Shown one piece after another: positions 31,539-63,410 of a stretch of 64,000 bases of DNA; position 1 is the first letter of the stretch; each line of letters starts with the position of its first letter. The notes beneath the pieces are model-generated. The model was given only the letters and a program-made list of their open reading frames with translations, was not told where the DNA came from and did no database searches. Both the position numbers and the translations under genes were made by a program. The stretch is from assembly GCA_965240325.2 (NCBI GenBank), contig OZ251227.1, forward strand, positions 1 through 64,000, read 5' to 3'. Origin of the DNA: Rebecca billardiae RCC1528 (Eukaryota > Protista > Haptophyta).

Positions 31539-32422
31539 GCCTCCTGGAATGGCCCTATGGTACACGGCGCGCGCGCAGCGCGTACCTGTACTGGTTCGTC
31601 GAGGTCGGGAGTTGCTCGGCAGGCTGGGATCAAGGATCACGGGCTCCCCGCCGTTCACGACGGTCCCAGAAGACTAAAAACCCGCTGAGATGGACTAAGA
31701 TCGCTTCAAGATTGTATCCGGGGTGTGTCGCCACGTCGCTCGTCTCGCCGCTCGAGCTATCCACTTCGCGGAAGGAGCCGAACCACCGAAAGCACGGGAG
31801 TCAGAGTGGTGAGTGAGATACATACCCAGATTCGAGAGCGGAGTGCGCTACATACGTAGAATTCAATCGATGCAATCTGTTGGTCGCAACCCTGCCATAC
31901 GCCGGTAAAAAAGCGTGTGTTAAACGCCATGGATCCAACCTGAACCCCTCCTCATACAGATCACCCCTCCCCATACAGATCACTCAAGGATTTAGTTAGG
32001 TGCGCGCAGCTTCACGCGCACGTCAATAGCTCTGACTGAGCTGCCAGTTTGAGTAGCTTACGGATGCAAGTATGATTATCATGATACTCACAGATGCCGT
32101 GGTTTCCCCGGGGGCTTGGGGAGGGGTTCATAGCCCTCTAAGCTAGTGCAACTCTTCATAATAATCATGCCTTCATAAGGGTTAACAGCGAAATCAAAGT
32201 TGTCACCGTCAAACGCCATCAAATACACATTTTGGCATTTCATGAGTAATCTCGCCCGATCTGAGTACTATTAGATATGATGACGATGATAACCGTGCAA
32301 GTTCAAACTCTGAAGGCAGGCCAGGCAACTACCGGAAGGCGCATGGGCGCATAGCCTCCGCCCAAGGTCCGCCTTGGCTTCCCAAAGTCCTCCACTCTCG
32401 TGGGCCGAGCACTGCCCCTGCA

Positions 32423-35400: not shown

Positions 35401-38400
35401 TGAGCCCGCCGAAGCGGTTCGCCCCCGCGCCCGCCTCGTCCTCGTCGTCCTCGTGCGCCGTCTCCTGCCGCACGAAGATGGGCGGAGGGATGGCGCACGC
35501 GCCAACGGCGCGCGCGCCACCGCTGCTGCACGCGCCACCGCGGCCCGCGGAGGCGGACGACGCGCCGGCGGCGGAGGGCGGCGGCTCGGCGGCGGCGGCG
35601 GCGTCGACGGGCACGGCCACCTCCTCCTCGCCGCCCGACTCGTCCGACGACGCCGGGCTGAAGTTGAAGATGGACGCGCCGAGCGGCTTGCGCGGCGCGT
35701 CGCCCGCCGCCGCCTTCTTGGCGGCGGCGCCGGCGCCGGCGGCGCCGCCCGGCCCGTCCGCGCCGTACTCCTCGCCGCGGTCGTCGTCGTAGTCGTTGTC
35801 CTGCACCTGCGCGAGCGCCCAGCCCACGCCCAGCCGGTTCGCCACGTCCTGCGCCGCGCCCCACGGCAGCACCATCTTGAGCACGATCTTCCAGTTGGGC
35901 GCCGTGTCGTCGACGAAGCGCAGACTCGCGACGCCGTCGCGCGAGGCGGCGCTGCCGAAGCCGCGCACGCCCGTGCGCGCGCGCCGCCCCGCGCCGGTCC
36001 AGCGCTTGGCCATGATGAGCTGGCAGTAGCGGTGCGCGATGAACGACTTGGCGCGCAGCTGGATCGCCAGGTCGATCGCCGTCTGCCCGCTCACCACGTG
36101 CTCCAGCACGTCGGACGCGACCGCAAACGTGGTGCGCGCGTCCTTGGCGGGCGGCCGTATCTGCTCGAGCACGTCGAGCGACACCTGCAGCCAGTGCTCG
36201 CGCATCGGCTCGATCTCGTCGCGGTGCTTGCGCCCCTGCGCGTCGTTGTACATCATGCGGTAGCACACGTCCGCCGCGAGCAGCGCGAGCCGCAGGTGCT
36301 GCCTCGAGAAGCGCCACAGCACGGTGGCGAGCTCCTGCTCGCCCATCAGCACGGCCCAGAAGAAGACGTCCTGCAGCTGCGTGCACAGCATCGGACGCAC
36401 CGAGCCCAGCCGCGCGCGCAGCGGCGAGCCGCGCACGCCGCCGCCGCTGCCGCCGGCGGCGTCGGCGGCGGCGCCGCCGCCGAGCCCGCCGCCCATCGCG
36501 CTCCGCCCGCGCGAGAGCGCGCGGCCCATCGCGCCGGTCACGCGTCGGCGCGCCGGGCTGGTCTGTGGCGTCGTCTGCGGCGTGGTGGCGCGCTCCGCCT
36601 CGAGCTGGTGCAGCTCGGCGTCCGCGAGGTCAAAGTGCATGCCGTGGTGCTCGGGCAGCAGCCACTGCTCGATGAAGCGGCGGAACTCGCCCGCCTCGCG
36701 CACGAACCACCGCTCCGCCGCCGCGTGCGCCTCCGTGTCCGAGCGCTTGAGGTAGGACACGGGCGCACGCAGCATCCGCCTGCGCTCTCTGAACACGCCC
36801 ACCGGCTGCAGCGAGAGCGGGGAGAGCCGGCTGGGCTCGAGCAGCGAGGCGCGGCCGAGGGAGGCGGAGCGCGCGGCCGAGATGAACGCCGCCGCGCCCA
36901 TCGCCGCGCTGCACCCCGACGACGCGCGGCGCATCGGCGCGTCGATCGAGTCGGAGCTCACGCCGCCCGCGCACCCGCCCGCGCACCCGCCCGCGCCGCC
37001 GAGCGCGCCGAGCGAGCCCGAGCGGCTGAAGCCGGCGCCGGCGCCGCCGAGCGCGCCGACCACCGCGCCGATGCTGCCCGAGCGGCTGTGGTTGGCGGAG
37101 GCGGCGCCGCCGCCGCTCGCGCCCACCGCGCCGAGGCTGCCCGAGCGGCTGCGGTTGGCGTCGGCGGCGCACGCCGCGTCCGCGCCCGCGCCCGCGCCCG
37201 CGCTCGGCGGCGTGGCGCCGGCGGCGCCCGCGCCGCCGCCCGCGTCGCTGGTGGGCGTGGCGAGGCCGGCCGGCGGCGGCGTCGTCGCCGGCGGCGCCGG
37301 CGCCTTCCCCGCGCTGCTCATCCGGCTCGCCGCCGCGGCGAGCGCGAAGCTGGCGGAGGTGGAGAGCCGGCCGCTCGCGCGGATGTACCGGCCCGGGTCT
37401 GAGGCGGTGCGCTCGGTGAGCGGCGGGAGCGCGAGCTCGGCCTCCTCCTCCTTCTCGAGGCGGTACAGCTTGGCGGAGATGGAGGACTGCAGCTTGCGGA
37501 AGATGCGGAACCGGTTCTTCTCCGACTGCATGTACAGCCGCGAGAGCATCACCCCCGCGATGTCCGCCCCGTTCGAGAGCAGCATCGTGACCACGTCCGC
37601 GCGCTGCGTCTCGAGCGCCAGCTGCAGCGACGCGCGCATCGAGGACTGCTGCTGCTGCGCGAGGCCGGCGGGGTGCGCGCCGGCGGCGGCGGCGGGCGAC
37701 GGGTCGCGCGGCACGCCGCGGCTCGCCGCCGCCCGCCGCGCCAGTATCCGCTCGATCATCTCCTCGTTGTCCCACACGATCGCGAGCTCGAGCAGCTTGT
37801 CCTCGGGCAGCGTCGGGTGGCGCGCGACCGCGGACAGGATCGAGAGCGAGATGTCGGTGGTGGAGTCGGAGCCGAGCTCGAAGAGCTCGATCAGCTCGCG
37901 CCGCGCGTACAGCTGGCGCAGCTGCTCCACCACCGCCGGGCGCGAGTACTTGCTCGCGATCTCCGGCGTGGTGCGCAGCAGGCGCTGCTCGAGCGCCAGC
38001 AGCGCGTCCTTTGCCTTCTCCACCTCCTGCTTGGCCGCGCGCACCGCGCGCTTGCCGTCCTGCCGCGCGGCCTTCACCTTGGCCTTGGCGGCGCGCACGC
38101 GCTCGGTGGCGCGCGCGATCTCGCCCGCCTCCTTCGGCGTGCGCGTCAAGAAGTCGCGGATCGCCGACGCCGCGCCGAGCGAGCCCGCGACCACGACGAC
38201 GGGCGTCTGGTTGCGCACGGCCTGCAGCACGGTGAGCAGCGTGTTCGGCCCGCCCTGCACGACGAGCAGCACGGCGGGGAGGTCGTCCTCGTGCTCGCAG
38301 TACGCGCGCTCGATGGCGGCGCGAAAGGCCACCTCGCCGCCCCACGCCGCGCGCCCCTTCTCCCCGTTGTCCACCAGCAGCAGGTGCGTGTGGTGCGGCT

Positions 38401-38950
38401 CGAGCGCCGCGCCGTCGATGTCGTTCGAGTCCTCCCCGTACGCGTACTCAGCCGTGCGGTACTTGTGCACGGCGCGGCCCTTGAGCGGGCGGAGCTCGCG
38501 CTCGATGAGCTCGGAGCCGACCACGTTGCCGTACAGCGCGACGCCGATCAGCGGGATGTCCGGGTGCGCCGCCAGCGCGTCGCCCACGTGCTTCATCACG
38601 CCGGTCGCAGAGCCGCCCGTGAACACCCACGCGTTCGTGATCTGCGCGGCGCGCACGAGGCCCTCGCGGAAGACGCGCTGGAGGCGCGGCAGCATCTTGA
38701 AGTCCTGGGCCGAGCCCGTCACCGAGATGATGATCGTCGGCTTGCCGTAGTACTCGTCCACCTGCCAGTCGTTGTCCAGCATGCGCGCGATGCGGCGCGG
38801 CAGCTTCTCCGCGTCCACCGCGCGCCGCACGTCGATGTGCAGCACCTTGGCGGGCTCGCGCAGCTGGCCGGAGGAGCGCGCGACCGAGGCGGTGTACCGC
38901 AGGTTGCACACGCGCAGCCGCGAGTCGAGGTCGTCGGGATCGGAGCCCAT
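32423..38950 (-). CDS. TRPM2: TRPM2-like cation channel with N-terminal SLOG/MHR domains and C-terminal NUDT9-homology ADP-ribose pyrophosphatase; exons 38950-34580, 34391-34268, 34124-33250, 33158-32886, 32680-32423
   Basis: MHR1/2: PTIIISVTGSAQDF, AWVFTGG..TGVMKHVGDA, LEPHHTHLLLVDNG, LLVVQGGPNTL. MHR3/4: LAIVWD, DVFFWAVL, FIAHRYCQ. Pore W.LFGDF, S6 LLLNLLIAMMS, TRP box EWKY. NUDT9H: [48 protein letters not shown].EEA and VYEGYVDDPRNTDNAWMET. Confidence 0.93.
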
Positions 38951-39331
38951 CTTCTCCTGCGCGCCGGCGCGCGCCGAGCCGCCCGATCCGCCGCCGCCGC
39001 CGCCGCTGCCGCTCGCGGCCCACGCCTCGCGCGGGGGGGCGGGAGCGCCGGGGCGCGCGACGACCCGCTGGTCGAAGAGGCGCGTGGTCGACGGGCCGCC
39101 GACCCTCGCGCGCAGACGGGGCGAAGGCGCCTGCGCTGCTCGCGGCCGCCAACGAGCCGCACCCCCGGCAGCAGCGGAGTGCAACGCAACGTCGTTGTGA
39201 TGTTCCGCGCTGGCCGCCCAAAGAACCGCTGACGACTGTCTTGGCGGCGCTGAGTGCTGAGCGAAAGGCGCCGGACCGCCGCCCGCGCCCGGAAACAGCC
39301 AGCACGAAGCGTCATTTCTGGTACATCCACG

Positions 39332-40258
39332 ATGGCGGGCGACTTCGCACGCGCGCAGGCGGCCAAGGCGGCGGGGAACGCGCACTACGCACAGGGGCGG
39401 CACGACGCGGCGCGCGAGGCGTACGCCGGGGCGCTCGCGCTGCTCGCGCGCGCCACGGAGGGCGACGCCGCGCGGGCGCTGCGCGCCGCGTGCCTGTGCA
39501 ACCGCGCGGCGGCCGCGCTCGCGCTGCAGGCGTGGGCGGACGCGGCCGCCGACTGCGCGGCGTGCCTCGACGAGCTGCGCGCGTGCGCGGCGCCGACGGA
39601 CGAGCTGCGCGTGCTGCGGCGCAAGGCGCTCTTCCGCCGCGCGCGCGCGTCCGAGGCCCTCGACGAGCCGGACGCCGCCGCCGACGGGTACGCGGCCTCG
39701 GTGCTGCGCTGCGAGCGCGGCTCCGAGCAGGGCGGCGAGGCGCTCGGCGCGCTGCACCGCGTGCTGACGGCGGCGGGCGGCGCGCCGGCGCCGTCGGACG
39801 AGGAGGTGCTCGGCCGCTCGGTCGACGCGCTGCTCGCCCTCGCCGCCGGCGCCGTCCCCGAGGACGAGGCCGACGCCGACGCGGAGGGCGGCGGCGCTGG
39901 CGGCGAGGGCGGCGGCGAGCGCGCGGCGCCGGCCGCCGCGCCCGCGCTGCCACCCGAGCACAAGCGCCTCGTGTACGCCGCGCTGCTCAGCGTGCTGCGC
40001 GAGCGCACGCACAAGCGCACGCCGGCGTTCAAGGCCTTCCTCCGGCGCGACGGCGCGCGCCTCGTGCACACGTGCGTGCACTCGATGGAGGGCGACTGGA
40101 TGGCGGACGCCAAGCGCGGCACGCTCAGAGACGCGGACGCGCTCGCACGGCTGCCGGGCGTGCGCGCGGCGATGGCGGCGCTCGAGCTCAACGCCGTCGG
40201 GCTGCACACGTCCGACGAGGCCAGCGCGGGGGCGCACGGCCCCGGCTGCACGCACTGA
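39332..40258 (+). CDS. TPR-repeat (co-chaperone-type) protein
   Basis: AKAAGNAHYAQGRHDAAREAYAGAL, CLCNRAAAALALQAWADAAADC and KALFRRARA form three TPR motifs. Confidence 0.8.
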   Translation: MAGDFARAQAAKAAGNAHYAQGRHDAAREAYAGALALLARATEGDAARALRAACLCNRAAAALALQAWADAAADCAACLDELRACAAPTDELRVLRRKALFRRARASEALDEPDAAADGYAASVLRCERGSEQGGEALGALHRVLTAAGGAPAPSDEEVLGRSVDALLALAAGAVPEDEADADAEGGGAGGEGGGERAAPAAAPALPPEHKRLVYAALLSVLRERTHKRTPAFKAFLRRDGARLVHTCVHSMEGDWMADAKRGTLRDADALARLPGVRAAMAALELNAVGLHTSDEASAGAHGPGCTH

Positions 40259-41194
40259 GTCGGCGCGCGCCGCCCGCCGCGCGCCCGCGTCGTCGTCGTC
40301 GCGGACTCGCGGCGGATATCGTATATATACGTATATATATATCGTCGCATGTGACGACGCCACCGGCACCCGCCAGCGGGCCGGCGGCCACGCATGACTC
40401 TGATGACTCAACGAGCAGGGCGGCCACTGTGCAAGTCTGCATGGCGCGCGCACTGTTGTAACAGTTGTAGTAGCGCTCGCTCTACTATATATATATATAT
40501 ATACTCTCTCTCATCGTCTGCTGCTCGATGATCTCTCGAATCTCGATCTCGCTCTAGACTCTAGCGCTGCGCTTATATTATAGTAGCAGCTGAGTCTCAG
40601 CAGTGTACATGCATATATATATATATATATCGATATATCGATATATATATATATATACTATACGTCGTATAGCTGCTATATGACGATGCTAGCGCCTAGC
40701 CGCGTGTCATTGTGTCAAGACGCGACGCGCGGGTCCCGCCGTGACTCACGCCCGCGGGCGTGACCCGCGTGACCGGTCCCGGAAAAGGCGGCGCGCCGGC
40801 GGACCGCATCAGCGGAGTGGGAGGGGATCGGGCAGCAGTCGTGTCATCACGCTCATCATGCGGTGGACAGGCGAGCGGCAGCGCGCGGCGCGCGCTGCCG
40901 CGATGCTTGGCGATGCCCCGCTGCTGTAGGTGCGGCGCCGCACGAGGCACTCCCTTGTTGAGGAGGGCGCGGTGGGGGGCTGGCTGGGCTGGGCGCGGGG
41001 CGGTGGGCCGAGGGCAGTGCGGGCACTGCCCACCGGTGTGGGCTGTGCGACGCCCTGCCTACTCACTGCCGTGCGGACGCTGGGCCGAGGCGCGTGTGCG
41101 GCGTGCCAAGGGCCGTGGGTGTGCGGTGTGCTGCCCGCTTGGACGAGCGCTGGGCCAAGGGCCCTTGATTGGGCCAAGGGCGGGGCGCGCGGGC

Positions 41195-51166: not shown

Positions 51167-54100
51167 ATGGCGCACCACTTTGCGAAGCCGGAGAACGCGC
51201 TGAAGCGCGCCGAGGAGCTGCTGCACGTCGGCCAGCAGTCCGCCGCGCTCGACTCGCTGCACGACGTGCTCTCGTCGAAGCGGCACCGCACGTGGACGCC
51301 GACGATCGAGCAGATCATCCGCAAGTACCTCGACATCTGCATCGCGACGAAGAAGGGGCGGATGGCGAAGGACGGGCTGATCCAGTACCGCATCATCTGC
51401 CAGCAGGTCAACGTTAGCTCGCTCGAGGAGGTGCTGCGCTACTTCATGGGCAAGGTCGACGCCGCGGCGGCGGCGGCGATGGCGCTGGCCGAGGACGTGA
51501 CGCCCGAGCACCAGGTGAGCGACCTGGACGCGGAGGAGACGCCCGAGTCGATCCTGCTCTCGGCGATGACGGGCGACGACCAGGCCACGCGCACCGAGCG
51601 CGAGCTCGTCACGCCGTGGCTCAAGTTTGTGTGGGAGTCGTACCGCACGGTGCGGGCACACGCTCGCACGGGCAGCCGGCCGCGCGCGCAAGCGCAAGCG
51701 CGAGCGCGAGGAGCGGAAGGGGGCGCGCACAGCCGGGCGCGGGCCGATGCGGCGGGTGGGCGTGCGTGTGGACGGCTGCGGGCAGCAGCAGCGCGCGCAG
51801 CAGCGCGGGCGCCGCTCGCCGCCACGCCCGGCGCTCACGCGCTCGCGCCGCGCCCGCTCGTGCGCTCGTGCGCTCGTGCGCTCGTGCGCGCGCGCAGGTG
51901 CTCGAGATCTTGCGCTCGAACGCAAAGCTGGAGGGGCTGTACCAGGAGACCGCGGGCAAGGCGTTCGGCTTCTGCGTCAAGTACAAGCGCGGCACGGAGA
52001 TGCGTCGGCTGTGCGAGCTGCTGCGCAACCACCTCGCGTCGCTCTCAAAGTACCAGCCCAAGGAGCAGCAGGCGCTCGGGCTGCCGCCCGACGGGCTGGG
52101 CATGCACCTGGAGGTGCGGTACGCGCAGCTCAACGCCGCGGCGGACCTGGAGCTGTGGCAGGAGGCGTACCGCACCATCGAGGACATCCACGCGCTCACG
52201 CTCACGCTCAAGAGGGCGCCGCGCACCGGCATGCAGATCAACTACTTTGGGCGGCTCGCGCAGGTCTTCCTGGTCTCGGACAAGCTGCTGCTGCACGGCT
52301 ACTGCCTGCTGCGCCTCGTCGCGCTGACGCGCGGGCGGAAGGTGGCGCCCGAGCCGGCGGAGCTGCGCACGCTCGCCACCACCGCCGTGCTCGCCGCGCT
52401 CGTCGCGCCGCTCTCGCCCGCCTCCGCGCCCGCGACCGCGTCGGACGAGTCGGGGCACGCGCTCTCGGCCGACGGCGGCGCGGCGGGCGTCTCGCTCGAC
52501 CTCGACCTCGAGCAGGAGAAGGCGCGGCGGATCGCGGCGGTGCTGGGCTTCGGCTCGATGCCGACGCGCGCCGCGCTGCTCGCCGAGCTCCGCGCCAAGG
52601 GCATCGTCCGCCTCGCGCACCCCGAGGTGGGCGCGCTGTACGAGGCGCTCGAGGGCGCGCGCGCGGCCGCGGGCCACGTGCCGATGGGCGCGGGCGCGCT
52701 CACGACCGCGGCGCTCGACGCGCTCGCGGCGGAGCCGCGCGCCGAGCCGTACTTCCCGCTGCTGCGCAAGCAGGTGGCGCTGCGCCTGCTGCAGCAGATG
52801 TCGCGCGTCTACTCGCGGCTCTCGCTCGCCAAGGCCACGCAGCTCGTCGGGCTGCTGCCGCGCGCGGAGGTCGAGCTGCTCGTCGTGCGCGCGGCGCGCA
52901 AGGGGCTGGTGAGCGCGCGCCTCGACGCGGCGTCGGACACGCTCACGTTCGCGCCGGCGGGGATCGAGCGCGACGCGGGGCTGCGCTCCGCGCTGGCCAC
53001 GCTCTACGGCGGCGTCGCCCTCGGCGCGAGCCTCGCCGCGCGCGACCTCTCGGGCGCCGAGCGCGTCGAGCGCGCGCACGCGGAGCGCAAGGCGGCGGCG
53101 CTCGCGCGGCTCTCGGCGGGCGCGCCCTCCGAGCACGCGCGGATGCTGCAGCGCAAGCTGGTGATCGAGCGGCGCAAGGAGGAGCTCGAGCGCGCGCTGC
53201 ACGTGCAGGAGGCCGCGCGGCGCGCGCAGGCCAAGGCCGAGCAGGCCGAGCAGGCCGACGCCGAGGCGAAGCGGCTCGCGTCCGAGGCCGCCAAGCGAGA
53301 CGCCGAGCGGCGCGAGCGCGAGCGCGCCGAGGAGGAGGAGGCGCAGCGGCGGAAGCTGGCGGAGCAGCTCGCCGAGCAGCGCAAGACGATCAAGAAGACG
53401 CTCAAGAAGGAGGACGCCGAGAAGATCGAGACGGACGTGGACAAGCTCGCCGCCATGTCCACCGCCAAGCTCGTGACCGAGCAGCGCGAGCTGATTGCAG
53501 ACGAGCGCGCTGAGTTTGAGCGCAGGCTCGAGCAGGTGCACACCCACGCGCACACCGCTGCGCTGCGCACACCGCTGCGCACGGCGCTGCGCACGGCGCA
53601 CCCCGTGCGCTCACGCCCCACGCCCCACGCCGCCCCGCCCCTTCGTCGCAGCTGCGCAAGCGCATGGACTACCTCGAGCGCGCGCGGCGCGAGGCGGAGC
53701 GGCCGCTGCTCGCCGCCGCGTTTGAGCGGCAGCAGCTGGAGGCGGCGGCCGCGCACAGGCAGCAGGTGCAGGACTTCATCGCGGCCGCAAAGGCCGCGCG
53801 GGAGAACGCGCTGGCGGAGCAGAAGCGGCTGCAGCGCGTCAAGCCGGACAAGGTGCGCTCCCCTTGCGCGGGGGCGGGGCTGCGCCGCGCCGCGCTGCGT
53901 GATGCTCCTATCCGAAATCCGATGCCCAGGGCCGCACGCAACAGCGGCCGATGCGGAGCGGCGCGCAGCGCACGGGCTGACAGCGCAGCGCGCGCGCACC
54001 GCCCAGCGCACACACCGCCCAGCGCACACCCCAGCGCGCACGCCGCCCGCGTCGCGCGCGCGCGCGCGCGCCGCTCAGCGCGCGCGCCCGCGCCCGCGCC

Positions 54101-55030
54101 CCCTCCGCCCCTCTGCAGGCCACCTTCGAGGCCGCCCGGCACGCCGCGCGCGTGGCGATCCACGAGGCCGCGTGCGCCAAGCGCAACAGCGAGCTGGCCG
54201 AGGCGCGGCAGACGCGCAAGGAGGAGCGGCGCGAGGCGCGCGCGGCGGCCAAGGCGGAGGCGCGGCGGCTCGCGGCGGAGCAGGCGGCGCGCGAGGAGGC
54301 GGCGCGCGTCGCGGCCGAGCGCGAGGCCGCGCGCAAGGCCGCCTTCGAGGAGGAGCGGCGCAAGCTTGCCGAGATCGAGGAGCGCAAGCGCGCCAAGGAG
54401 GCGGAGGTCGAGGCGCGGCTGCAGGCCGAGCGGCTCGCGGCCAACGGGCCGACGTGGGCGGACCGCGACGACGACGAGGAGGACGAGGGGCTGCCCTCGC
54501 GCCCCGGGTTTGGCGCGGCCAAGGAGAAGGAGGCCGGCAAGCCCAAGCCCGCCCCCGCCGCGGGCGAGCCCGACGCCGACGCCGAGCGCGCCGGCGGCTC
54601 CAACTCGTGGGAGACGCAGCCGCTGCGCGACGCGCGCCCGCCCGCGCTCGCGCACGGCCGCTCGGGCGAGCGCTGGCAGGACCGGGAGCGCCCGCCGCCC
54701 GCGCGCGGCGGGCCGCCCAGCGGGTGCGACGCCGCGCCGCCGCGCACGCCGCGCGCGCGGCCCGCGCCGCCCCGCCCCCCGCGCGCGTCGCCGCGTGCGC
54801 TCACCCGCCGCCCCCTGCGCCCCCTTTGCCGGTGCGCGCCGCGCAGGCCGCGCGACGAGCGCTTTGGGGGCGGCGGCCGCGGCGGCGACGAGCGCGGCGG
54901 CGGCCGCGGCGGCGACGACCGCTTCGGCGGCGGGCGCGGCGGCGACGACCGCTTCGGCGGGCGGGGCCGCTTCGACGACCGCGGCCCGCCGCCGCGCGGC
55001 CCGCCGGGCGACGCTGACCGCCCACCACCG

Positions 55031-55069
<39 letters not shown>

Positions 55070-55354
55070 TGGCGCGAGCGCGAGGCGTCTCGCGGCGCCG
55101 GTGGCGGGCCGCCGCCGCCGGGCCCGGGCGAGCGCGGGCCGCCGCGCGGGCCGCCGGGCGACGACCGCTTTGGCGGGCGCGGCGGCGACGACCGCTTCGG
55201 CGGCGGCCGCGGCGGCCGGTTCGACGACCGCGGGCCACCGGGCCGCGGCGGCGACCGCGGGCCGCCGCCCCCGCGTGAGGACCGGCCGCCGCCCCCGCGC
55301 GACGACCGCCGCGGGGCCGCCGGCGGCGGCGACTCGGGCGGCCGCTGGCGCTGA
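51167..55354 (+). CDS. EIF3A: Translation initiation factor eIF3 subunit A; exons 51167-51649, 51898-53535, 53652-53852, 54119-54723, 54847-55354
   Basis: KPENALKRAEEL, AKDGLIQYR, VTPWLKFVWESYRT|VLEILR, ELWQEAYRTIEDIH, PCI and coiled-coil regions, DYLERARR, and C-terminal GGDDRFGG repeats. Confidence 0.96.
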
Positions 55355-56276
55355 GCGCTGCAGCGCAGCGCAGGCGCTGCAGCGCAGGCGCCTCCACGCG
55401 CGGCTCGGCGGCACAGCTCGGCCGCGTGCCGCTGTCGGCCGCCGCCCCGAGCGCTCAGCAGCCCGCTCCGGCCGCTCCGCCCGGCTGCGAGTGCCACGAG
55501 TCACTCGACCGAACCGCTCAACCGGACGGACGACAAACCCGCTGCGGCGCCCACGGGACCCCGTGGCACCGGGCCGCACGCCACTCCGGGGCCACAACGC
55601 GCGCCGCCACGGGCTCCGTGCAGAGCGCGTGAGGCTGCCTCAAGTGCGCCAGTGGCTGTGCCACTCACTGCCAGCCCGAAAGACCAGCTACCTAGCAGCT
55701 AGCTTTTGACACTCCTGACTGCCAGGTCCGAGACGCCGCACGGCACATGCTGCATGAGCGTGCATTAGACAGCTATGCTCTGATGCCGTAACGTTAGAAT
55801 AAGAATTCAGAACGAACCTCGCGCTACTAATGAATGAGATCACCGCGTCATCAACTGACATCATCACTGAATACTAGCGCACTTTTGGCGTGAACGGTGT
55901 CGTCAACCGCCGGATCAAATACATTATATATAATAAAACCATGGCCGGGGACTTATTGCTGATGTAGTGATGTTCAAAGTGGCCTGGGATACCATACAGT
56001 CGTTATGATAGGTAGATACAGGTACCGTAGGCCAATGAATAGTGTACAGTAGTGGTGCAGCACGCGGTACTGGTTATCATAAAACATAGTAAACCTAAAC
56101 TGTGAACGTGGCCCGTGCGTTAAAAAGTTGCTGGCCATACCGTACAGTACTTAGCTTCGTCAGTATGCGCCAGTCCTCGTTCCAAATCGTTGCATTACCC
56201 GCGCGTCTGTTCGCTCCAGGCGGACACACCGCATCCCAGCACCACGGGCGCGCATCGATACGGTAGCTGCTGCGCC

Positions 56277-59200
56277 ATGGGGCGGCGGGTGCTCGCGGCG
56301 GCCTGCTTTTGGCCCGCCGTGCTCCTCGCGGGCGGCGGCGGCAGCGGCCCCGGCGGCGCGGCGGCGGACGAGCTGCGCGTCGGCCTGGTCGGCCCGCTCG
56401 ACGCGGGCAACATCGAGGACGCGCTCGTCTCCCTCCTCGCCGTGCTCGACTTCAACGCGCGGAGCGACGCGGTGCTGCCCGCGCTCGGCAACGGCACGGC
56501 GCGCGCGCACGCGGCGCTGGCGGGCTGCGACGTGCGGCTGTCGGTGGACGTGCGCGACTCGGCGCTCGATCCGCGCACCGCGCTCACCGCCGCCTTCGAC
56601 GGCCACCGGCTGCACGGCTGGCGCGCGCTGCTGGGCGCGTGGCGCTCGGCGTGCTCGGAGCCGATCGCGACCGCCGGCCGCGTGCTGCCGCTGCCGCAGG
56701 TGTCGGCGCTCTCGACGAGCGCGGAGCTGTCGGACGGGGTGGCGTACCCCATGTTCTCCCGCGTGATCGCGAGCGACGCCGGCACCGCCTCCGCCATCCT
56801 CGCGCACGTGCTCGCGCACGGCTGGCGCGAGATCGGGCTGCTGCACGTGGACGACGCGTTCGGCCGCGGCATGGCGGAGGCGCTGCGCGCGCGGTGCGCC
56901 GAGGCGGGCGTGCTGGTCGTGCGCGCGAGCTTCGGCTTCGACGACGACGACGCGCTCGCCGCCGCCGCCGCCTCGATGCGCGGGCTGCAGGGCGCGCCGC
57001 TGCGTGTGCTCGTCGCGGTGCTCTTTGACTCGCACCTGCGGCCGCTCGCGCGCGCGGCGTCGGCCGCCGGGCTGGGCGGGCCGGCGTCGCACCTGGTGCT
57101 GGGCAGCCCGCCGTCGGCGCAGGCGCTCGCGGGCGCGACGAGCGAGGAGGAGCGCGCGCTGCTGCACGGCGCCGCGTACGTCTCGCCCTCCGCCGACCAC
57201 CCGGACGGCGGCGGCGCGTTCCGCGCGCTCGCGGCCGCGCGCTGGCGCGCCGCGGCGGCCGACAACGGCACGGCCGCGGCGCTGCTCGCGCTGCTGCCGG
57301 CGGGCGCGGCGCGCGACGCGGCGCGGGCGCGGCTCGCGCGCGCGGACGAGCCGCCCAAGTCGATCGCCGGCTTCGCGTACGACGCCGTCGTCGCGCTCGG
57401 CCTCGGCGCCTGCGCGGCGGGCGGCGCGGCCGCGGCCGGCGCCGACCCGCGCTCGCTCGTGCGTGCGATCCGCGGCGCGCGCTTCCTCGGCGTGAGCGGC
57501 AACGTGAGCCTCGACGGCGGGACGGGCGAGCGCGACGTGCGCACGCAGGCGTTCGAGCTGGCGAACGTGGTGTACGGCCCCGCCGGCGCGCCGGGCGGCG
57601 CGTCCGCCTCCGTCGTCGGCTCCTTCGACGGCTCGGGCTGGAGCCTGCGCGCGCCGTTCCTGTTTGCGCACGGCGGCACCGAGCCGCCCGCGGACGGGCT
57701 GGGCGCCGCGCTGCTGCGCGTGGGGCTGCTCGGCCGCTTCGCGGGGGAGGCGCTGAACGACCGGGACACGGTGGTGGCGGCGCTGATCGCCGCGCGCCTC
57801 TTCAACGCGCGCAACCTCTCCGCCATCCACCCCGACCTCGGCGCGAGCTCCGCCGCCGAGCTCGGCGCGTGCGACGTGCTCCTCGAGCCCGCGCCCGCGC
57901 ACACGGCGGGCAGCGCGCTCGCGGCCGTGCGCGCGTACGTCGCCGCGGGCGGCGAGGGCGGCGGCGAGGGCGGCGGCGCGGCGGCGGTCGAGCTGGGCGC
58001 GAGCGGCGCGCAGCTCGGCGGCACCGCCACGCGCGCCGGCTGGCACGCCATCGTCGGCGCCGCGCGCTCCGCCGTCACCGAGCCCCTCGCCCTGCTCGCG
58101 GGCATCGACCGCGTGCCCGTCGTCTCGTTCAAGTCGAGCGCGCCCGCGCTCTCCGACACGGGCCGCTTCCCGACGCTGGCGCGGACGGTGCCGAGCGACG
58201 AGGGCGTGGGCGTGGGGCTGGCGCACTACCTCGCGCTGCACGGCTGGCGCCGCGCCGGCCTCGCCCACGTCGCCGACGCGTACGGCGTCGGCTTCGCCGG
58301 CGCGATGCGCGGCGCGTGCGAGCGGCTCGGCATCCGGCTGCACTCCGCGTCGTGGCGGTACGGCGACGGGCCGTCGATACGGCGCGCGGCGGCGGCGCTG
58401 CGCGGCGAGGACGTGCGCGTGCTCGTCGCGGTGGGCTCGGAGGCGGACGTGCGCGCGCTGCTGCGCGCCGCCGTCGACGTCGGCCTCGCCTCCCCGCGCC
58501 ACCACTGGGTCCTCACCGACGGCGTCTCGCCCGACTTCTTCGGCGCGGCGGCCGCGGCCGAGCCCGCGCTCGCGCCCGCGCTGCTGGGCGCCGCGCACGT
58601 GACGGCGCGCGGCGGCCGCGAGGGGTACGCGCCGTGGGACGCGTTCGCGGCGCGCTGGGCGGAGGGCTCGCTCGGCAGCGTGGACGAGCTCAACGCGCAG
58701 CTGCCCCCCGCCGCCGCGCTGCCGCCCGCCTTCTTCGCGCCCGCCGTCCGGCCGTCGCACGCCGCCGCGTTCGGGTTCGACGCGGTGCTCGCACTCGGGC
58801 TGGGCGCGTGCAGGGCGGCGCGCGACGCGCGCACCAACCAGCCGACATTCGCGGCGGAGGCGTGGTGGGCGGCGGCGCCGGGCGGCGCCGCCGCGCCCGC
58901 CGACGCGCCGCCCGCCGCGCTCGCCTTCGACGGCCTCTCCGGCCGCGTGCTCCTCGACGAGCACGGCGACCGCTCCCTCGAGACTGGCGCGCTCGCGCTC
59001 GCGAGCGCGCAGGCCGACGGTGCCGACGGCCGCGTGCGCGCCGTCGACGTCGGCGTCTTTGACGGCGGGCGGTGGCGGCTCTCGGCGCCGCAGCTCTTCG
59101 CCGACGGGAGCGCGCAGCCGCCGAGCGACGGCGTCGACGACGCGGACGGCGCCGACGCCGGCGGCGCCGACGACGACGACGACGCCGACGCCGACGCCGA

Positions 59201-61934
59201 CGCGGACAGCGCCGGCGCCGAGCCCGCGCTGCTCGACCAGCGCACGCTGCTCAGCCTCACGCTCGCGCCGGTGGGGGCGGTGCTGCTGTGCTGCGGCTGC
59301 GCGCTGTGCTCCTCGCACCTGCTCCGCGCGTACCGCGCGGCCGCGCACGCCCACCGCCGCGACCAGCACGAGATCGCACAGCGCGTCGCGCGCGCCACCG
59401 ACGCGGCCACCACGCTCTCCTTCCCCGCGTGCTACGTGCGGCTGGACAAGCTGCGCGAGCACGGCCGGCTGCTGCCGCACGAGGCGGTGCGCGACGCGGC
59501 CGAGCTCACGATGCTCGACTCGTACGAGCAGCTGCTCACCTTCGCGCAGGAGCACACGCTCGTCTGTGCGCGCGGCCGCGGCGGCGGCGGCGCGCGGCGC
59601 GCGGTGCGCGCGGCCGCGCGCGCACCGCGACGCTCACACCGTTTGCGGCCCTGCCTTTGCGCACCGTGCGCGTGCGTGTGCGTGCGCGTGCGCGTGTGCG
59701 GCGCACCAGTCGTGTCGCACCAGTGGCTGGCGGGCGACGAGCCCGACCCGGACTCGACGCACTACCCGGCCATCCTGCGCGCCGCGTGTGCGCTGTGCGA
59801 GAGGCTGGCCCTCTCCGAGGCGGACGTCTTCCTCTGGGTGCGGCGCGGCGCACACACGGCGCACGGCGCGCACGCACCGCCGCGCACCGCCCACGCGCGC
59901 GCGCGCCCCGCCCCGCCCCGCCCCGCCCCGCCCCGCGTCCGCGTCTGCGTCCGCGCGCAGATCGACTACCTCTCGATCCCGCAGGCGTGCGAGGCCGTGA
60001 AGGCGCTCTCGATCGCCTCGCTGTGCGTGTACGCCTCGACGGCGCACCACTTTGTCGTGGTCGCGCCCAGCGTGCGCCACCGCGACCACGGCGCGCTGTG
60101 CGACACCACGTCCTACCAGCGGCGCGGCTGGTGCCGGCTCGAGCAGTGGGCGTGCCTCGCGGGCGGCGCGGGCGAGCAGATGTACGTGTGCGACGACCTC
60201 GCGCCGCTGCGGCCGGTCGCGGACGTGCGCGGCTGGCTGCTGGACTCGATCCACGTCTTCGACGGCGAGTTCTCCAACGAGGCGGACCGGCACAAGGTGG
60301 TGGAGCCGATCCTCGGGCTGTGGGCGCTGGCGCTGCGGCAGAGCGCGCACGACTCCGCGCACGACTCGCACGAGCACGCGGCGGAGGAGGAGGAGGCGCA
60401 GGGGCCGACGCGCGCGGCGGCGGCGCTCGACGCGGCGCGCGGCGGCGCCGAGCCCGGCGGCGCGGCAGCAGCGGCGCCGACGGGCGTGGACTCCCCGCGC
60501 CGCCCCTCCGCGGGCTCGCTCTCCTCCGCGCGGCTGGTGCACGAGCTGGTGCTGCCGCGCAAGCAGTCCGTCTTCCCGCCCGCCTACTTCCTGAACGGAC
60601 GGCTGATCGAGCGGCTGGAGCGGCACGTGGCTGCGCTCATGGCCGCGCCCGCGGGCTCGCCGCGCGCGCCGGCGGGCAGGCTCGGCGCGCCCGGCCGGTG
60701 GCGCGGCGCGGCGGGCTCGCTCTTCTCCAGGCGGAGCGCGCGCTGGGAGCAGGCCGCGCGCTTCAGCGCGCGGCCGAGCGACCCGCGCCCGCCCTCGCCG
60801 CGCAGCTCGCACGGCAGCGCGGTCGCGCCGTGCGCGGCGGCCGCCGACGCGGCGTGCGGCGCGCAGCCGCACGGCGGCCGCACGAGCGGCCGGCGCGCCA
60901 GCACCGCCGCCGCGGGCGGCATGGCGCCCGCCGAGCTCAGCGCGATCGCCAAGCGCGCGCTGCAGGCGCGCGAGACGGACGCGCAGGACCGGAGGGAGCG
61001 CGCGGCGCGCGCGGCGATGGCCGCGGCCGCGAGCGGCGGCGGCGGCGCGGCGCCTCCGCCCGACGGACCGCCGCTGCCGCCGGGCGCGCAGCCGCGCGCC
61101 GCGCGCTGCGCACACGCCAACGGCGCCGGCGGCGCCGAGCGCGCGGGCGGCGGCGTGCGCAGCGCGGCCAGCAGCGGCAACCTCAGCGGCAACCTCTCGG
61201 GCAACTTTGGCGCGCTGCTGAGCAACCTGGGCGCGTGGAGCGCGGGCGGCTCCGGCCGGTTTGGCGCCGCGCAGCCGCCGCGCGTGGCGGCGAGCGCGAG
61301 CGCGGGCAGCCTCGGCGCAGGCCGCGCGCACCCGAGCGGCGGCAGCCGGGCGCGCGGCCGCTCGGCCCCGCTGCGCGACGACGGCGCCTCGGACGGCGCG
61401 CCCGCCAACACGGGGGGCGCCGGGTGCGGTGCGTGCGCGGGCTGGGCGCACAGCAGCACGGGCAGCCTCGAGCGGGAGCTGGCGGAGGCGCCCAGCCCGC
61501 GCGCTGCGCCCAGCTGCGCGCCCGCCCGGCTGGGCGCCGAGGTGGCGTCCGACGAGGCCGAGTACTCGCCGATGCAGTTCCTCGCGGACAGCGTCGCCAA
61601 GCTCGCGCCCGGGCTGATGCCCGCGCCGCACGGCAGCAGCGGCAGCCCGGTGCCGCTGCCGGTGCAGGCGCCCAGCGCGCTCGTGCGCCCGCGGCCGCGC
61701 GCCAACGCGGCCCAGCCTTCCCAGGACGGGCCGCCGCCGCTTGCGCAGGAGCGCAGCGGCAGCCACCGCTCGCTGCTCAGCGGCCATGCTGGCAGCAGCA
61801 GCGGGCGCGCCCTCGATCGCTTGCTCGCATCGTCCCGGCGCGTCGCGCCCGAGGCCGACGCGGCGACTCGTCGGGGCAGCGGTCTCGCGCAGCACCACCG
61901 CCACCAGCCCCCTCCGAGGCCTGCGACTCCGTGA
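56277..61934 (+). CDS. Single-pass receptor: signal peptide, two tandem Venus-flytrap (ANF_receptor) domains, one TM helix, cytoplasmic HET/TIR-like domain and disordered tail; in-frame introns 59566-59709 and 59838-59960
   Basis: VFT1: LLGAWRSACS, PQVS..STSAELSD...YPMFSRVIASD, GWREIGLLHVDDAFG, FAYDAV, FLGVSGNV. VFT2: IVGAARSAVT, SSAPALSD..RFPTLARTVPSD, DAYG, FGFDAV, FDGLSGRV. TM at about 59245-59325. Spliced FVSHQWL...PDP, WIDYLSIPQ and YQRRGWCRLE. Confidence 0.85.
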   Translation: MGRRVLAAACFWPAVLLAGGGGSGPGGAAADELRVGLVGPLDAGNIEDALVSLLAVLDFNARSDAVLPALGNGTARAHAALAGCDVRLSVDVRDSALDPRTALTAAFDGHRLHGWRALLGAWRSACSEPIATAGRVLPLPQVSALSTSAELSDGVAYPMFSRVIASDAGTASAILAHVLAHGWREIGLLHVDDAFGRGMAEALRARCAEAGVLVVRASFGFDDDDALAAAAASMRGLQGAPLRVLVAVLFDSHLRPLARAASAAGLGGPASHLVLGSPPSAQALAGATSEEERALLHGAAYVSPSADHPDGGGAFRALAAARWRAAAADNGTAAALLALLPAGAARDAARARLARADEPPKSIAGFAYDAVVALGLGACAAGGAAAAGADPRSLVRAIRGARFLGVSGNVSLDGGTGERDVRTQAFELANVVYGPAGAPGGASASVVGSFDGSGWSLRAPFLFAHGGTEPPADGLGAALLRVGLLGRFAGEALNDRDTVVAALIAARLFNARNLSAIHPDLGASSAAELGACDVLLEPAPAHTAGSALAAVRAYVAAGGEGGGEGGGAAAVELGASGAQLGGTATRAGWHAIVGAARSAVTEPLALLAGIDRVPVVSFKSSAPALSDTGRFPTLARTVPSDEGVGVGLAHYLALHGWRRAGLAHVADAYGVGFAGAMRGACERLGIRLHSASWRYGDGPSIRRAAAALRGEDVRVLVAVGSEADVRALLRAAVDVGLASPRHHWVLTDGVSPDFFGAAAAAEPALAPALLGAAHVTARGGREGYAPWDAFAARWAEGSLGSVDELNAQLPPAAALPPAFFAPAVRPSHAAAFGFDAVLALGLGACRAARDARTNQPTFAAEAWWAAAPGGAAAPADAPPAALAFDGLSGRVLLDEHGDRSLETGALALASAQADGADGRVRAVDVGVFDGGRWRLSAPQLFADGSAQPPSDGVDDADGADAGGADDDDDADADADADSAGAEPALLDQRTLLSLTLAPVGAVLLCCGCALCSSHLLRAYRAAAHAHRRDQHEIAQRVARATDAATTLSFPACYVRLDKLREHGRLLPHEAVRDAAELTMLDSYEQLLTFAQEHTLVCARGRGGGGARRAVRAAARAPRRSHRLRPCLCAPCACVCVRVRVCGAPVVSHQWLAGDEPDPDSTHYPAILRAACALCERLALSEADVFLWVRRGAHTAHGAHAPPRTAHARARPAPPRPAPPRVRVCVRAQIDYLSIPQACEAVKALSIASLCVYASTAHHFVVVAPSVRHRDHGALCDTTSYQRRGWCRLEQWACLAGGAGEQMYVCDDLAPLRPVADVRGWLLDSIHVFDGEFSNEADRHKVVEPILGLWALALRQSAHDSAHDSHEHAAEEEEAQGPTRAAAALDAARGGAEPGGAAAAAPTGVDSPRRPSAGSLSSARLVHELVLPRKQSVFPPAYFLNGRLIERLERHVAALMAAPAGSPRAPAGRLGAPGRWRGAAGSLFSRRSARWEQAARFSARPSDPRPPSPRSSHGSAVAPCAAAADAACGAQPHGGRTSGRRASTAAAGGMAPAELSAIAKRALQARETDAQDRRERAARAAMAAAASGGGGAAPPPDGPPLPPGAQPRAARCAHANGAGGAERAGGGVRSAASSGNLSGNLSGNFGALLSNLGAWSAGGSGRFGAAQPPRVAASASAGSLGAGRAHPSGGSRARGRSAPLRDDGASDGAPANTGGAGCGACAGWAHSSTGSLERELAEAPSPRAAPSCAPARLGAEVASDEAEYSPMQFLADSVAKLAPGLMPAPHGSSGSPVPLPVQAPSALVRPRPRANAAQPSQDGPPPLAQERSGSHRSLLSGHAGSSSGRALDRLLASSRRVAPEADAATRRGSGLAQHHRHQPPPRPATP

Positions 61935-62224
61935 ATCGTGAGCGTCATCAATATCATCGCCGGCCCGCTCCCCGTCACGCTCACTGAGGCTGATCGACGC
62001 ACTGTGAGAAGAGTCAGACTGTGCGTACGTACGTGTACGTAGTGATGGACGACTACGATGACGATGTGTCGTCGCGGCCGGCGATGAAGCTAGCTAGTCA
62101 GCTATGGTCGTATTCGTCGTCTACTCGACTACTTGACGACGAAGTAGTAGTTGTCGTCGTCGTCGCCCATCGACCTTCGGCTTCGTCACTCAGCGGTGAG
62201 GGGTGCTGGACAGTGTACGGCGCG

Positions 62225-63410
62225 ATGGCTGCCGCCGTCATCGTCAGGCGACGACAGCAGCAGCCGGCCTGCTCGGGGCGGTGGGCTGCGGGAAGACGAC
62301 GGCGACGGCGCGCGCTGCAACGGCTGCCCGCGACCGCCGCGGCCGCGCTGCTGGCAGTGGTGCTCGGCGCGTCGCCCACGTCCGCCGAGCAGCTCGAGCG
62401 CGTGCTCGACGACGTGGCCGGCAGCGCGGCCATCGGCCGGCTCGGCCGCGCGCCGCTCGCGGACGGGTGCGCGCGCGTGTACGTGGACGTGGGCACGAAC
62501 GTGGGCGTGCAGATCCGCAAGCTGTTCGAGGCGGACAAGTACCGCGGTGCCATGGTGCTCGGCTACTTCAACGTGCTGTTTGGCAACGGCACCAGCCGCG
62601 CGACCGACGGCGCCCTGTGCGCGTTTGGGTTTGAGCCCAACCCGCTGATGACGCCGCGGCTGCGGCAGCTGGAGGAGAGCTACGCCGCGCAGGGCTGGCG
62701 CGTGCGCATCTTCACCGAGACGGCGGCGGGCGCGTCCGACGGCGTGGTCAACATCTCGTACGGCGAGAGCATGGCCGACAGCCTCGCCACGATGGCGGGC
62801 GCGCCCGCCGGCGCGCGGCCGGCGCTCGGCGGCGCCGTGAGGCTCGAGCGGCGGAGCTGCGCGCCGGCTGGACCTGGCGCGCTGGCTGCGCGAGGAGGTG
62901 GTCTTCCGGAGGATACCGGCGCGCGGCGGCCGCGCCCGCCACCGCCCCGCGGTGCTGATGAAGCTCGACGTCGAGGGCGCCGAGATCGAGCTGCTGCCCG
63001 CGCTGCTCCGCTCAGGCGTGCTCTGCCACGTCAACCTCACGATGGCCGAGTGGCATGGGCGCATGTTTGGCGGGCCCGGCACGGCGCTCCGGAGGCGGTA
63101 TGATGGGGTCGTGCGGGGCGCCGAGCGGCAGATGCGCGCCGCGTACAGCAGGACTAGCTGCCGCGCCGTGCTCATCCAATTCGACGACGAGACCTTCGCC
63201 TTCGACGACGGCACGCGGAAGGCCAACTTCGGACCGACGAGCGAGTCTCGCGCCCACGGCTTCAACGCGTCGCTCATGACGCCGCTCCCGCCAAATAAAG
63301 AGCGTGCGACGGCTCTGGCTCCCGCTGGCGGAGCTGCGCGCGGTGCGCAGGACCAGTGGGGCAGTACTCGCGCCCCGCCGCGAGTGGGCGCCGGTCGCGC
63401 CGGAGCCTAG
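62225..63410 (+). CDS. FkbM-type SAM-dependent methyltransferase with N-terminal anchor, interrupted by an apparent +1 frameshift near 62841-62868
   Basis: First frame: VYVDVGTNVGVQIRKLFE and AFGFEPNP. Second frame: LDLARWL...VLMKLDVEGAEIELLPALL...EWH. Confidence 0.7.

Follow-up and report, generated by a model that had tools for sequence, protein, structure and literature searches.

A tandem Venus-flytrap receptor gene with a HET-like cytoplasmic domain

The window analysed here is a 64,000-nt stretch of DNA from Rebecca billardiae RCC1528 (contig OZ251227.1, positions 1 to 64,000), and the subject of this study is a receptor gene near its 3′ end. Our analyses showed that positions 56277-61934 of the forward strand (+) hold a nuclear gene of this very GC-rich, haptophyte-like alga; the gene is intact, has at least three exons and encodes a product of ~1,797 amino acids (aa). 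The protein is laid out as a signal peptide, two Venus-flytrap modules in tandem, an acidic stalk, one transmembrane (TM) helix, a ~300-aa domain resembling the fungal HET domain, and a low-complexity tail. We consider it quite probable that this architecture is correct and that the protein is a signalling receptor, a reading that commits us to no single output chemistry. Within a large, undescribed family of protist receptors, it is an ordinary member.

The receptor frame is free of stop codons over 56190-61934 (+), and its earliest in-frame ATG lies at 56277. The following features were assigned along it; GC3 denotes the GC content at third codon positions, HMM the profile hidden Markov model of the family, and pLDDT the per-residue confidence score of the AlphaFold models.

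56277..56366 (+): start codon (first in-frame ATG) and probable signal peptide, with MGRR, a hydrophobic stretch and a Gly/Ala-rich end
56373..57686 (+): Venus-flytrap module 1 (ANF_receptor / type-1 periplasmic-binding fold); PF01094 at aa 86-413, E 6.7e-26
57699..59132 (+): Venus-flytrap module 2; PF01094, E 4.3e-25; 39% identical to module 1
57927..58013 (+): 87-nt Gly/Glu/Ala low-complexity loop or candidate third intron inside module 2, from alignment and GC3
59133..59231 (+): acidic Asp/Ala-rich extracellular stalk, from the translation
59247..59324 (+): single TM helix, then a basic Arg/His stretch, from the Kyte-Doolittle profile
59322..59565 (+): N-terminal part of the HET-like domain (juxtamembrane helix and two beta-alpha units), to the end of exon 1; family HMM 3-83, 56.6 bits; pLDDT >90
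59566..59709 (+): intron 1, 144 nt, GT..AG, splitting a codon after its first base; homologue gap, HMM break, GC3, pLDDT 34-40
59710..59837 (+): exon 2, with strand A carrying S-H-Q-W (59715-59726), PDP, helix A, and strand B as far as the Trp of W-I-D; HMM 85-127, 41.6 bits
59838..59960 (+): intron 2, 123 nt, GT..AG, phase 0, inside strand B; homologue gap, HMM break, pLDDT 39-47
59961..60638 (+): main part of the HET-like domain, with IDYLSIPQ, the VVVAP strand, YQRRGWCRLEQW and the C-terminal helical bundle to about VFPPAYF; HMM 127-294, 194.5 bits
60342..60515 (+): variable acidic/Ala-rich loop within the helical part of the domain, an insertion relative to the profile that varies among the homologues too; low pLDDT
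60639..61934 (+): low-complexity Ala/Gly/Pro/Ser/Arg-rich C-terminal tail and stop codon (predicted 3′ end), from the open frame

The original prediction, read from the letters without database searches, had claimed a signal peptide, two complete ANF_receptor-type domains, an acidic linker and one TM helix. Both flytraps were recovered: Pfam ANF_receptor (PF01094) matched twice, with 91.6 and 88.9 bits against a gathering cut-off of 25.4 (171.9 bits over the whole protein, in 2 stretches), and the query segments 56277-57698 and 57699-59219 gave E-values of 6.7e-26 and 4.3e-25, respectively. The nearest solved sequences are the mGluR6/8 flytraps for module 1 (E 1e-10) and the CaSR flytrap for module 2 (E 4e-10); for both modules, GABA-B, T1R and bacterial ligand-binding receptors rank lower. 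With 39% identity between them and the same short conserved tail closing each, the two modules are, judged by these sequences, an internal duplication. The Ser of an R-S motif is invariant in the flytrap alignment and is followed by S-T-S / S-S-A in both modules. These residues may be equivalent to the ligand contacts of the mGluRs, where class C flytraps have a conserved Ser in the G-x-x-x-S loop and a Ser/Thr in the S-x-S/T-S strand after it. We discounted as chance a weak EAD5 match within flytrap 2, whose 16.5 bits fall short of the cut-off of 27. The linker and membrane span were also found as claimed, the former as the Asp/Ala-rich stalk and the latter as the sole strong hydrophobic segment (aa 991-1009, with a score of 2.12 in a 19-residue Kyte-Doolittle window). 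The signal peptide is plausible by its composition as read from the translation, having a basic start and a ~15-residue hydrophobic stretch.

Exon 1 by itself runs from the signal peptide through both flytraps and the TM helix into the HET-like domain, of which it encodes the first 81 profile positions. As this exon already joins the ectodomain to the start of the cytoplasmic domain, the predicted fusion of the two on a single gene is independent of any splice. The sensor fold (ANF_receptor flytraps) is shared with natriuretic-peptide receptor guanylyl cyclases and class C G protein-coupled receptors (GPCRs), and the natriuretic-peptide receptors are likewise single-pass proteins with an enzymatic cytoplasmic output. 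The window protein differs from both groups in that its output domain is HET-like rather than a cyclase or a seven-helix transmembrane bundle, and in that each chain carries two flytraps in tandem.

Two in-frame introns within the HET-like domain

The original prediction had also proposed two stop-free, in-frame introns within the cytoplasmic domain. Both begin with GTGCG, end with CAG, and are divisible by three in length and in frame. The in-frame, stop-free state itself carries no significance, because at 80% GC the chance of it for both introns is ~1 in 20. Alignment showed that both are gaps in 9/9 database homologues. A family HMM built from 92 relatives, with the receptor gene of the window left out, gave three separate matches on the unspliced frame, at hmm 3-83, 85-127 and 127-294, which sum to 297 bits and part exactly at both introns; on the spliced protein it gave a single match of 347 bits (E 3e-108). 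The GC3 of the exons is 0.98-1.00, that of intron 1 is 0.81 with loss of codon periodicity, and that of intron 2 is 0.95. When the unspliced window sequence was modelled with AlphaFold, the residues encoded by the introns had pLDDT 34-47, against values >90 on either side in the domain; values <50 were confined to residues 54-99, to residues 150-170 and 177-188 in the segment encoded by intron 2, and to part of the variable acidic loop. In the model of P0001, the closest homologue, intron 2 is located inside strand B and is therefore not a tolerated insertion. After splicing, the spacing from S-H-Q-W to S-I-P-Q and on to R-G-W-C is 45 and 50 residues, as in all homologues, and FVSHQWL, PDP, WIDYLSIPQ and RRGWCRLE read exactly as had been predicted. 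On this comparative and compositional evidence, we regard the two introns as real. The drop in GC3 is usable as a detector of introns and frame in a genome with stop-free frames on all six frames.

The segment 57927-58013 in module 2 adds 29 residues relative to module 1 and all aligned homologues, and its removal restores their length. Its edges (GTGCGC...GCGCAG, phase 0) provide a donor and an acceptor resembling those of the two real introns. The GC3 of this segment is 29/29, which favours a low-complexity coding loop rather than a third intron. For the same kind of reason (GC3 0.97), the variable loop at 60342-60515 is probably coding. The C-terminal tail (60639-61931) has an in-frame GC3 of 0.91-0.99, and no Pfam family matched it.

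The cytoplasmic domain as a probable distant branch of the HET superfamily

Our results support, at the superfamily level, the assignment of the cytoplasmic domain to a divergent branch of the HET superfamily that lies outside the Pfam family as currently modelled; the link is a distant one. An N-terminal beta-alpha extension and a C-terminal helical bundle of its own mark this branch. After splicing, three HET blocks stand in order, namely SHQW, W-I-D-Y-L-S-I-P-Q and R-G-W-C-R-L-E. The fungal HET domains (PF06985: HET-E/D/R, TOL, PIN-C, HET-6, Bh) have the same three blocks in the same order, the shared elements being an aromatic-x-S-x-x-W type strand, W-x-D-x-x-x-I-x-Q and R-x-W-x-x-x-E. When the 92 relatives were scanned one by one, PF06985 was matched by 25 of them at E ≤ 1 and by four at E ≤ 1e-3 (best 1.6e-5); among the matches listed, no other Pfam family was matched by more than two of the 92, and none at E ≤ 1e-3. 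The sub-threshold HET match of P0005, a relative from a JGI metagenome, places its W-V-D-Y-S-S-V-P-Q region on HET profile positions 45-91, in agreement with the block equivalence of the original prediction. The HET domains differ in their setting: those of fungi are cytosolic, are often N-terminal in NLR proteins and act in allorecognition cell death, whereas the window domain is C-terminal to the TM helix of a surface receptor.

Comparisons with the HET fold were made against predicted HET models only. The model of homologue P0001 (pLDDT 83) was matched by Foldseek to the predicted Neurospora crassa HET-6 with a probability of 0.91 and a template-modelling (TM) score of 0.24, and to an Ascomycota Atlas cluster (99% PF06985) with a TM score of 0.50 over 219 residues; the window's own model reached 0.40 against a HET Atlas cluster. 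When exon 3 was compared by itself, HET accounted for 57 of its 100 nearest named Atlas clusters, at scores of only 0.54-0.59. Foldseek alignments to Swiss-Prot models were predominantly to MurQ etherase and were rejected as spurious (root-mean-square deviation ~20). HET homologues have been reported in stramenopiles, haptophytes, choanoflagellates, green algae and bryophytes, and a remote relationship between HET and TIR has been proposed by the same authors (Dyrka et al., PMC4986451).

Across the 92 sequences, which are 27-45% identical, twelve polar or aromatic residues are invariant: E, F, S, H, W, D, D, Q, Y, R, W and E. The first Glu lies in the N-terminal extension, and strand A contributes F, S, H and W. 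P-D-P supplies one Asp, W-x-D and P-Q after strand B supply the other Asp and the Gln, respectively, and the start of helix C has the Y, R, W and Glu of R-G-W-C-R-L-E. All twelve are intact in the window protein, where the invariant Glu of YQRRGWCRLEQW is encoded by codon 60141-60143. By the topology of the model, these residues would sit where strands A, B and C reach their C-terminal ends and helix C begins, the place at which flavodoxin-like and TIR-type folds have their active or substrate-binding site. The W-C-x-x-E context at the helix start after strand C presumably resembles the catalytic-Glu motif of plant TIRs, and we treat this as a lead only. The model of P0001 also shows the TM segment running as a continuous helix into the domain.

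Likeness to TIR and other flavodoxin-like folds

In the modelled domain, residues 78-222 form the core, a flavodoxin-like alpha/beta sandwich. Nucleoside deoxyribosyltransferases match it best among single domains (Z ≤6.3). Among TIRs, SARM1 gave Z 5.5-6.0 and MyD88, MAL, RUN1 and ThsB gave Z 4.7-5.4. The nucleotide-sugar-binding halves of NodZ, FUT1, FUT8 and POFUT2 gave Z 6.0-7.0, and flavin mononucleotide (FMN) reductases Z ~5. The noise ceiling stated for the structure-comparison tool is Z 8. As the TIR-level values are within noise and other Rossmann-like domains score equally or higher, the predicted fold is compatible with TIR and does not single it out; the link to TIR would be carried mainly by the published HET-TIR argument.

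The domain was also compared with known TIR-type systems. With the TIR NADases (SARM1, the TIRs of plant TNLs, bacterial ThsB/TIR-APAZ) and nucleoside 2-deoxyribosyltransferases it shares the flavodoxin-like core, with weak structural matches at Z 5-6.3. It differs from the TIR NADases in having no sequence-level match to them and a longer loop before the Glu helix, and its invariant S-H-x-W and P-Q are without a TIR counterpart. In layout, the window protein resembles Toll-like and interleukin-1 (IL-1) receptors: both are type-I single-pass proteins with a TIR-superfamily-like alpha/beta domain just inside the membrane, and in both cases a large set of soluble proteins has the same domain. 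Here, however, the ectodomain is a tandem flytrap and not leucine-rich repeats (LRRs) or immunoglobulin (Ig) domains, and the structural matches to TIR stay at Z 5-6.

Several results weigh against a HET/TIR-type reading of this domain. Exon 2, exon 3 and the unspliced stretch all failed to match Pfam HET (PF06985, gathering cut-off 22.5 bits) at E ≤ 10, and neither HET nor TIR of Pfam matched the whole unspliced protein or its separate exons. TIR was absent from the 25 families listed of the 42 Pfam families that the 92 relatives matched at E ≤ 1, and no TIR match was found at E ≤ 1e-3. No solved structure reached Z ≥ 8, and GT-B fucosyltransferase domains scored at least as high as TIRs. Foldseek against the Protein Data Bank (PDB) returned nothing at E ≤ 1e-3, and the PDB sequences gave nothing at E ≤ 10 to phmmer with exon 3 or to hmmsearch with the 92-sequence profile. 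The possible correspondence of the invariant Glu to the catalytic Glu of TIRs is drawn from the order of secondary structures and likeness of motif. Papers from 2023-2025 describe the structure and chemistry of HET as still undetermined: its mode of action is stated to be unknown (PMC10890737), and its biochemistry and structure not determined (PMC12881547, PMC10197012). Thus, of the HET domain named in the original prediction, the ordered blocks and the PF06985 matches of 25/92 relatives stand, while the window's own pieces lack a Pfam HET match. Of its likeness to TIR, the flavodoxin-like core stands, while the TIR matches (Z 4.7-6.0) are at noise level and no Pfam TIR is among the matches listed.

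The receptor family in databases

A search with the domain region yielded nine proteins, and all nine have the same domain after a TM helix with differing ectodomains (DOMON/cytochrome b561, ANF_receptor, beta-helix, Cache-type according to precomputed Pfam, and LamG/Ig). A profile search of 1.84 billion cluster representatives gave the size of the family as 3,625 clusters at E ≤ 1e-3, 2,056 at E ≤ 1e-10 and 561 at E ≤ 1e-30. In 89 representatives the start of the domain is complete and is preceded by 60 or more residues; a hydrophobic helix abuts the domain in 85 of these 89, and in six the domain lies behind multi-pass membrane regions. The ectodomains of 47 long members include Peripla_BP_6/ANF_receptor, Phosphonate-bd, SBP_bac_1/8, OpuAC, dCache_1, MHYT, Ephrin_rec_like, FG-GAP, LamG and Ig-like domains. 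AlphaFold DB contains many relatives (E 1e-31 to 1e-8), with automatic names that include "Receptor ligand binding region", "Cache" and "CHASE"; four of the top thirty are automatically named "Heterokaryon incompatibility domain-containing protein". The relatives are recorded mostly from Haptophyta, and some of the AlphaFold DB accession series we take to be protist and dinoflagellate entries. Atlas neighbours include apparently soluble relatives in which the same domain is fused to Ank, MORN, LRR, TPR or HNOB (haem NO-binding). Together, the soluble and membrane members suggest a whole signalling network built on the HET-like domain. No second copy of the domain was detected in the window by the family HMM on all six frames.

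The receptor architecture is not unique and is present, unremarked, in public databases: P0005 has the same tandem-ANF and HET-like arrangement, and the receptor architecture recurs in A0A6V2T8Q1 (AlphaFold DB). The original prediction had called the architecture unfamiliar from the literature. Our literature searches, which covered HET domains in connection with algae, haptophytes, dinoflagellates, phytoplankton or NAD, likewise found no description of receptor-type HET proteins; it is the recurrence in databases that qualifies the claim.

In these data, a distant HET branch appears as the standard intracellular output of a very large, modular receptor set in haptophytes, dinoflagellates and other marine protists, and the data point to an unexplored signalling system in ecologically dominant phytoplankton. 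To our knowledge, few receptor kinases or LRR receptors are recognised in this phytoplankton group. The sensor modules have guessable ligand classes (amino acids, phosphonates, glycine betaine, sugars), and the receptors offer a tractable setting for the function of HET-type domains, with a defined ligand in and a measurable output out. The window gene is one paralogue only, and its function, throughout this text, is what we infer.

Proposed mechanism and alternative explanations

A signalling output under ligand control is suggested by the juxtamembrane position of the domain, by the continuous helix leading into it from the TM segment and by the many kinds of small-molecule sensor. In the proposed mechanism, a small ligand, probably amino-acid-like, would close one or both flytraps, and the altered geometry of the ectodomain or dimer would be transmitted via the TM helix and the continuous juxtamembrane helix. 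The HET-like domain would then be activated by induced proximity and emit an intracellular signal.

Two alternatives question the gene or the domain itself. The gene model could be an artefact, representing two neighbouring genes, a pseudogene or a chance open frame in 80% GC DNA, and long stop-free frames are indeed present on all six frames of the window. Yet a single exon spans everything from the signal peptide through both flytraps and the TM helix to the end of the first quarter of the HET-like domain, the invariant residues are all intact, GC3 is 0.99 throughout the receptor frame, and the spliced product fits the family profile with the 347 bits given above (E 3e-108). This explanation is largely refuted and we consider it extremely improbable. 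The domain could also be a Rossmann-like enzyme binding nucleotides or nucleotide sugars, with no real kinship to TIR and a likeness to HET confined to short motifs. Its best solved matches, the halves of NodZ, FUT1, FUT8 and POFUT2, are of this kind and align with both the core and the extra strands on its N-terminal side. Their Z of 6.0-7.0, however, is within the noise range of the tool, HET is the only recurrent Pfam match, predicted fungal HETs align over ~220 residues, and HET makes up the majority (57/100) of the nearest named Atlas clusters of exon 3, albeit at low scores. On balance, such an enzyme seems to us quite unlikely.

The other alternatives accept the receptor and concern what it does; the NAD-consuming or death-type output put forward in the original prediction is a conjecture. 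A death-type effector as in fungi would mean that the receptor, triggered for example by an infochemical, allelochemical or pathogen cue, kills the cell, which would amount to receptor-driven programmed cell death in phytoplankton. The HET relationship of the domain speaks for this; the ectodomains, however, are mostly of nutrient or osmolyte type (phosphonate, OpuAC, SBP, ANF, Cache) and the family is very large, so that the pattern fits routine sensing more closely than suicide. Among the >100 HET genes of a fungal genome, too, few act in incompatibility (PMC10890737). With a domain behind the TM helix under many sensors in so large a family, a signalling output is favoured over a dedicated death effector, which we judge rather unlikely. 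Signalling could instead proceed through a non-enzymatic adaptor, as in animal Toll-like receptors, that recruits cytosolic proteins with the same domain by homotypic assembly. The soluble relatives fused to Ank, TPR, LRR, MORN and HNOB are as expected of adaptors or downstream partners, and the layout of ectodomain, one TM helix and TIR-like domain mirrors that of Toll-like and IL-1 receptors. But the twelve invariant residues are mostly polar (S, H, D, D, Q, Y, R, E) and are kept at 27-45% identity, which makes an active or ligand site likelier than an interface. We therefore give the adaptor a minor, though real, chance.

Taking the protein as a signalling receptor, we weighed three kinds of output. 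Cleavage of NAD+ or a related nucleotide via the invariant Glu of RGWCRLE is our tentative first choice, short of an even chance; NADase chemistry is plausible because this Glu is invariant among the aligned sequences. Non-enzymatic homotypic assembly with the many soluble family members, or some other catalysis, may each apply instead, either being possible but clearly less than even. A bolder proposal is that the HET-like domain is a ligand-gated NAD+/nucleotide glycohydrolase or cyclase, and that the family is a major undescribed class of protist surface receptors that respond to bound extracellular nutrients or infochemicals by making ADP-ribose-type messengers. We regard this as a long shot. 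If true, it would provide the first biochemical function for any HET domain.

The window also contains a gene for a TRPM2-type channel on the reverse strand (32271-40450, -), ~20 kb from the receptor gene. Its long frames match SLOG/LSDAT_euk (E 1e-43) and a TRPM2-like domain (E 3e-10), and NUDIX is matched separately (E 1e-8). It is a speculation that this channel might be a target of ADP-ribose-type messengers from HET-like receptors, and the proximity may be a coincidence. If it were so, the path would be complete, with a ligand at its start, an NAD-derived messenger in between and the entry of Ca2+ through SLOG/Nudix TRPM2-type channels at its end.

Genomic setting

The GC content is 69-85% throughout the window. 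Downstream of the receptor gene, the open frames at 62021-63410 (+), of 360 and 170 aa, had no Pfam match at E ≤ 1e-3. The upstream neighbour is the gene for eIF3a (51616-55700, +), recognised by its PCI/TPR-like region (E 3e-59); as this eukaryotic gene lies directly upstream, the window is nuclear eukaryotic DNA. Behind the eIF3a gene lie ~2 kb of repetitive sequence that looks coding-like and is extremely rich in Arg, Gly, Ala and Pro, with several open frames spread over the two strands.

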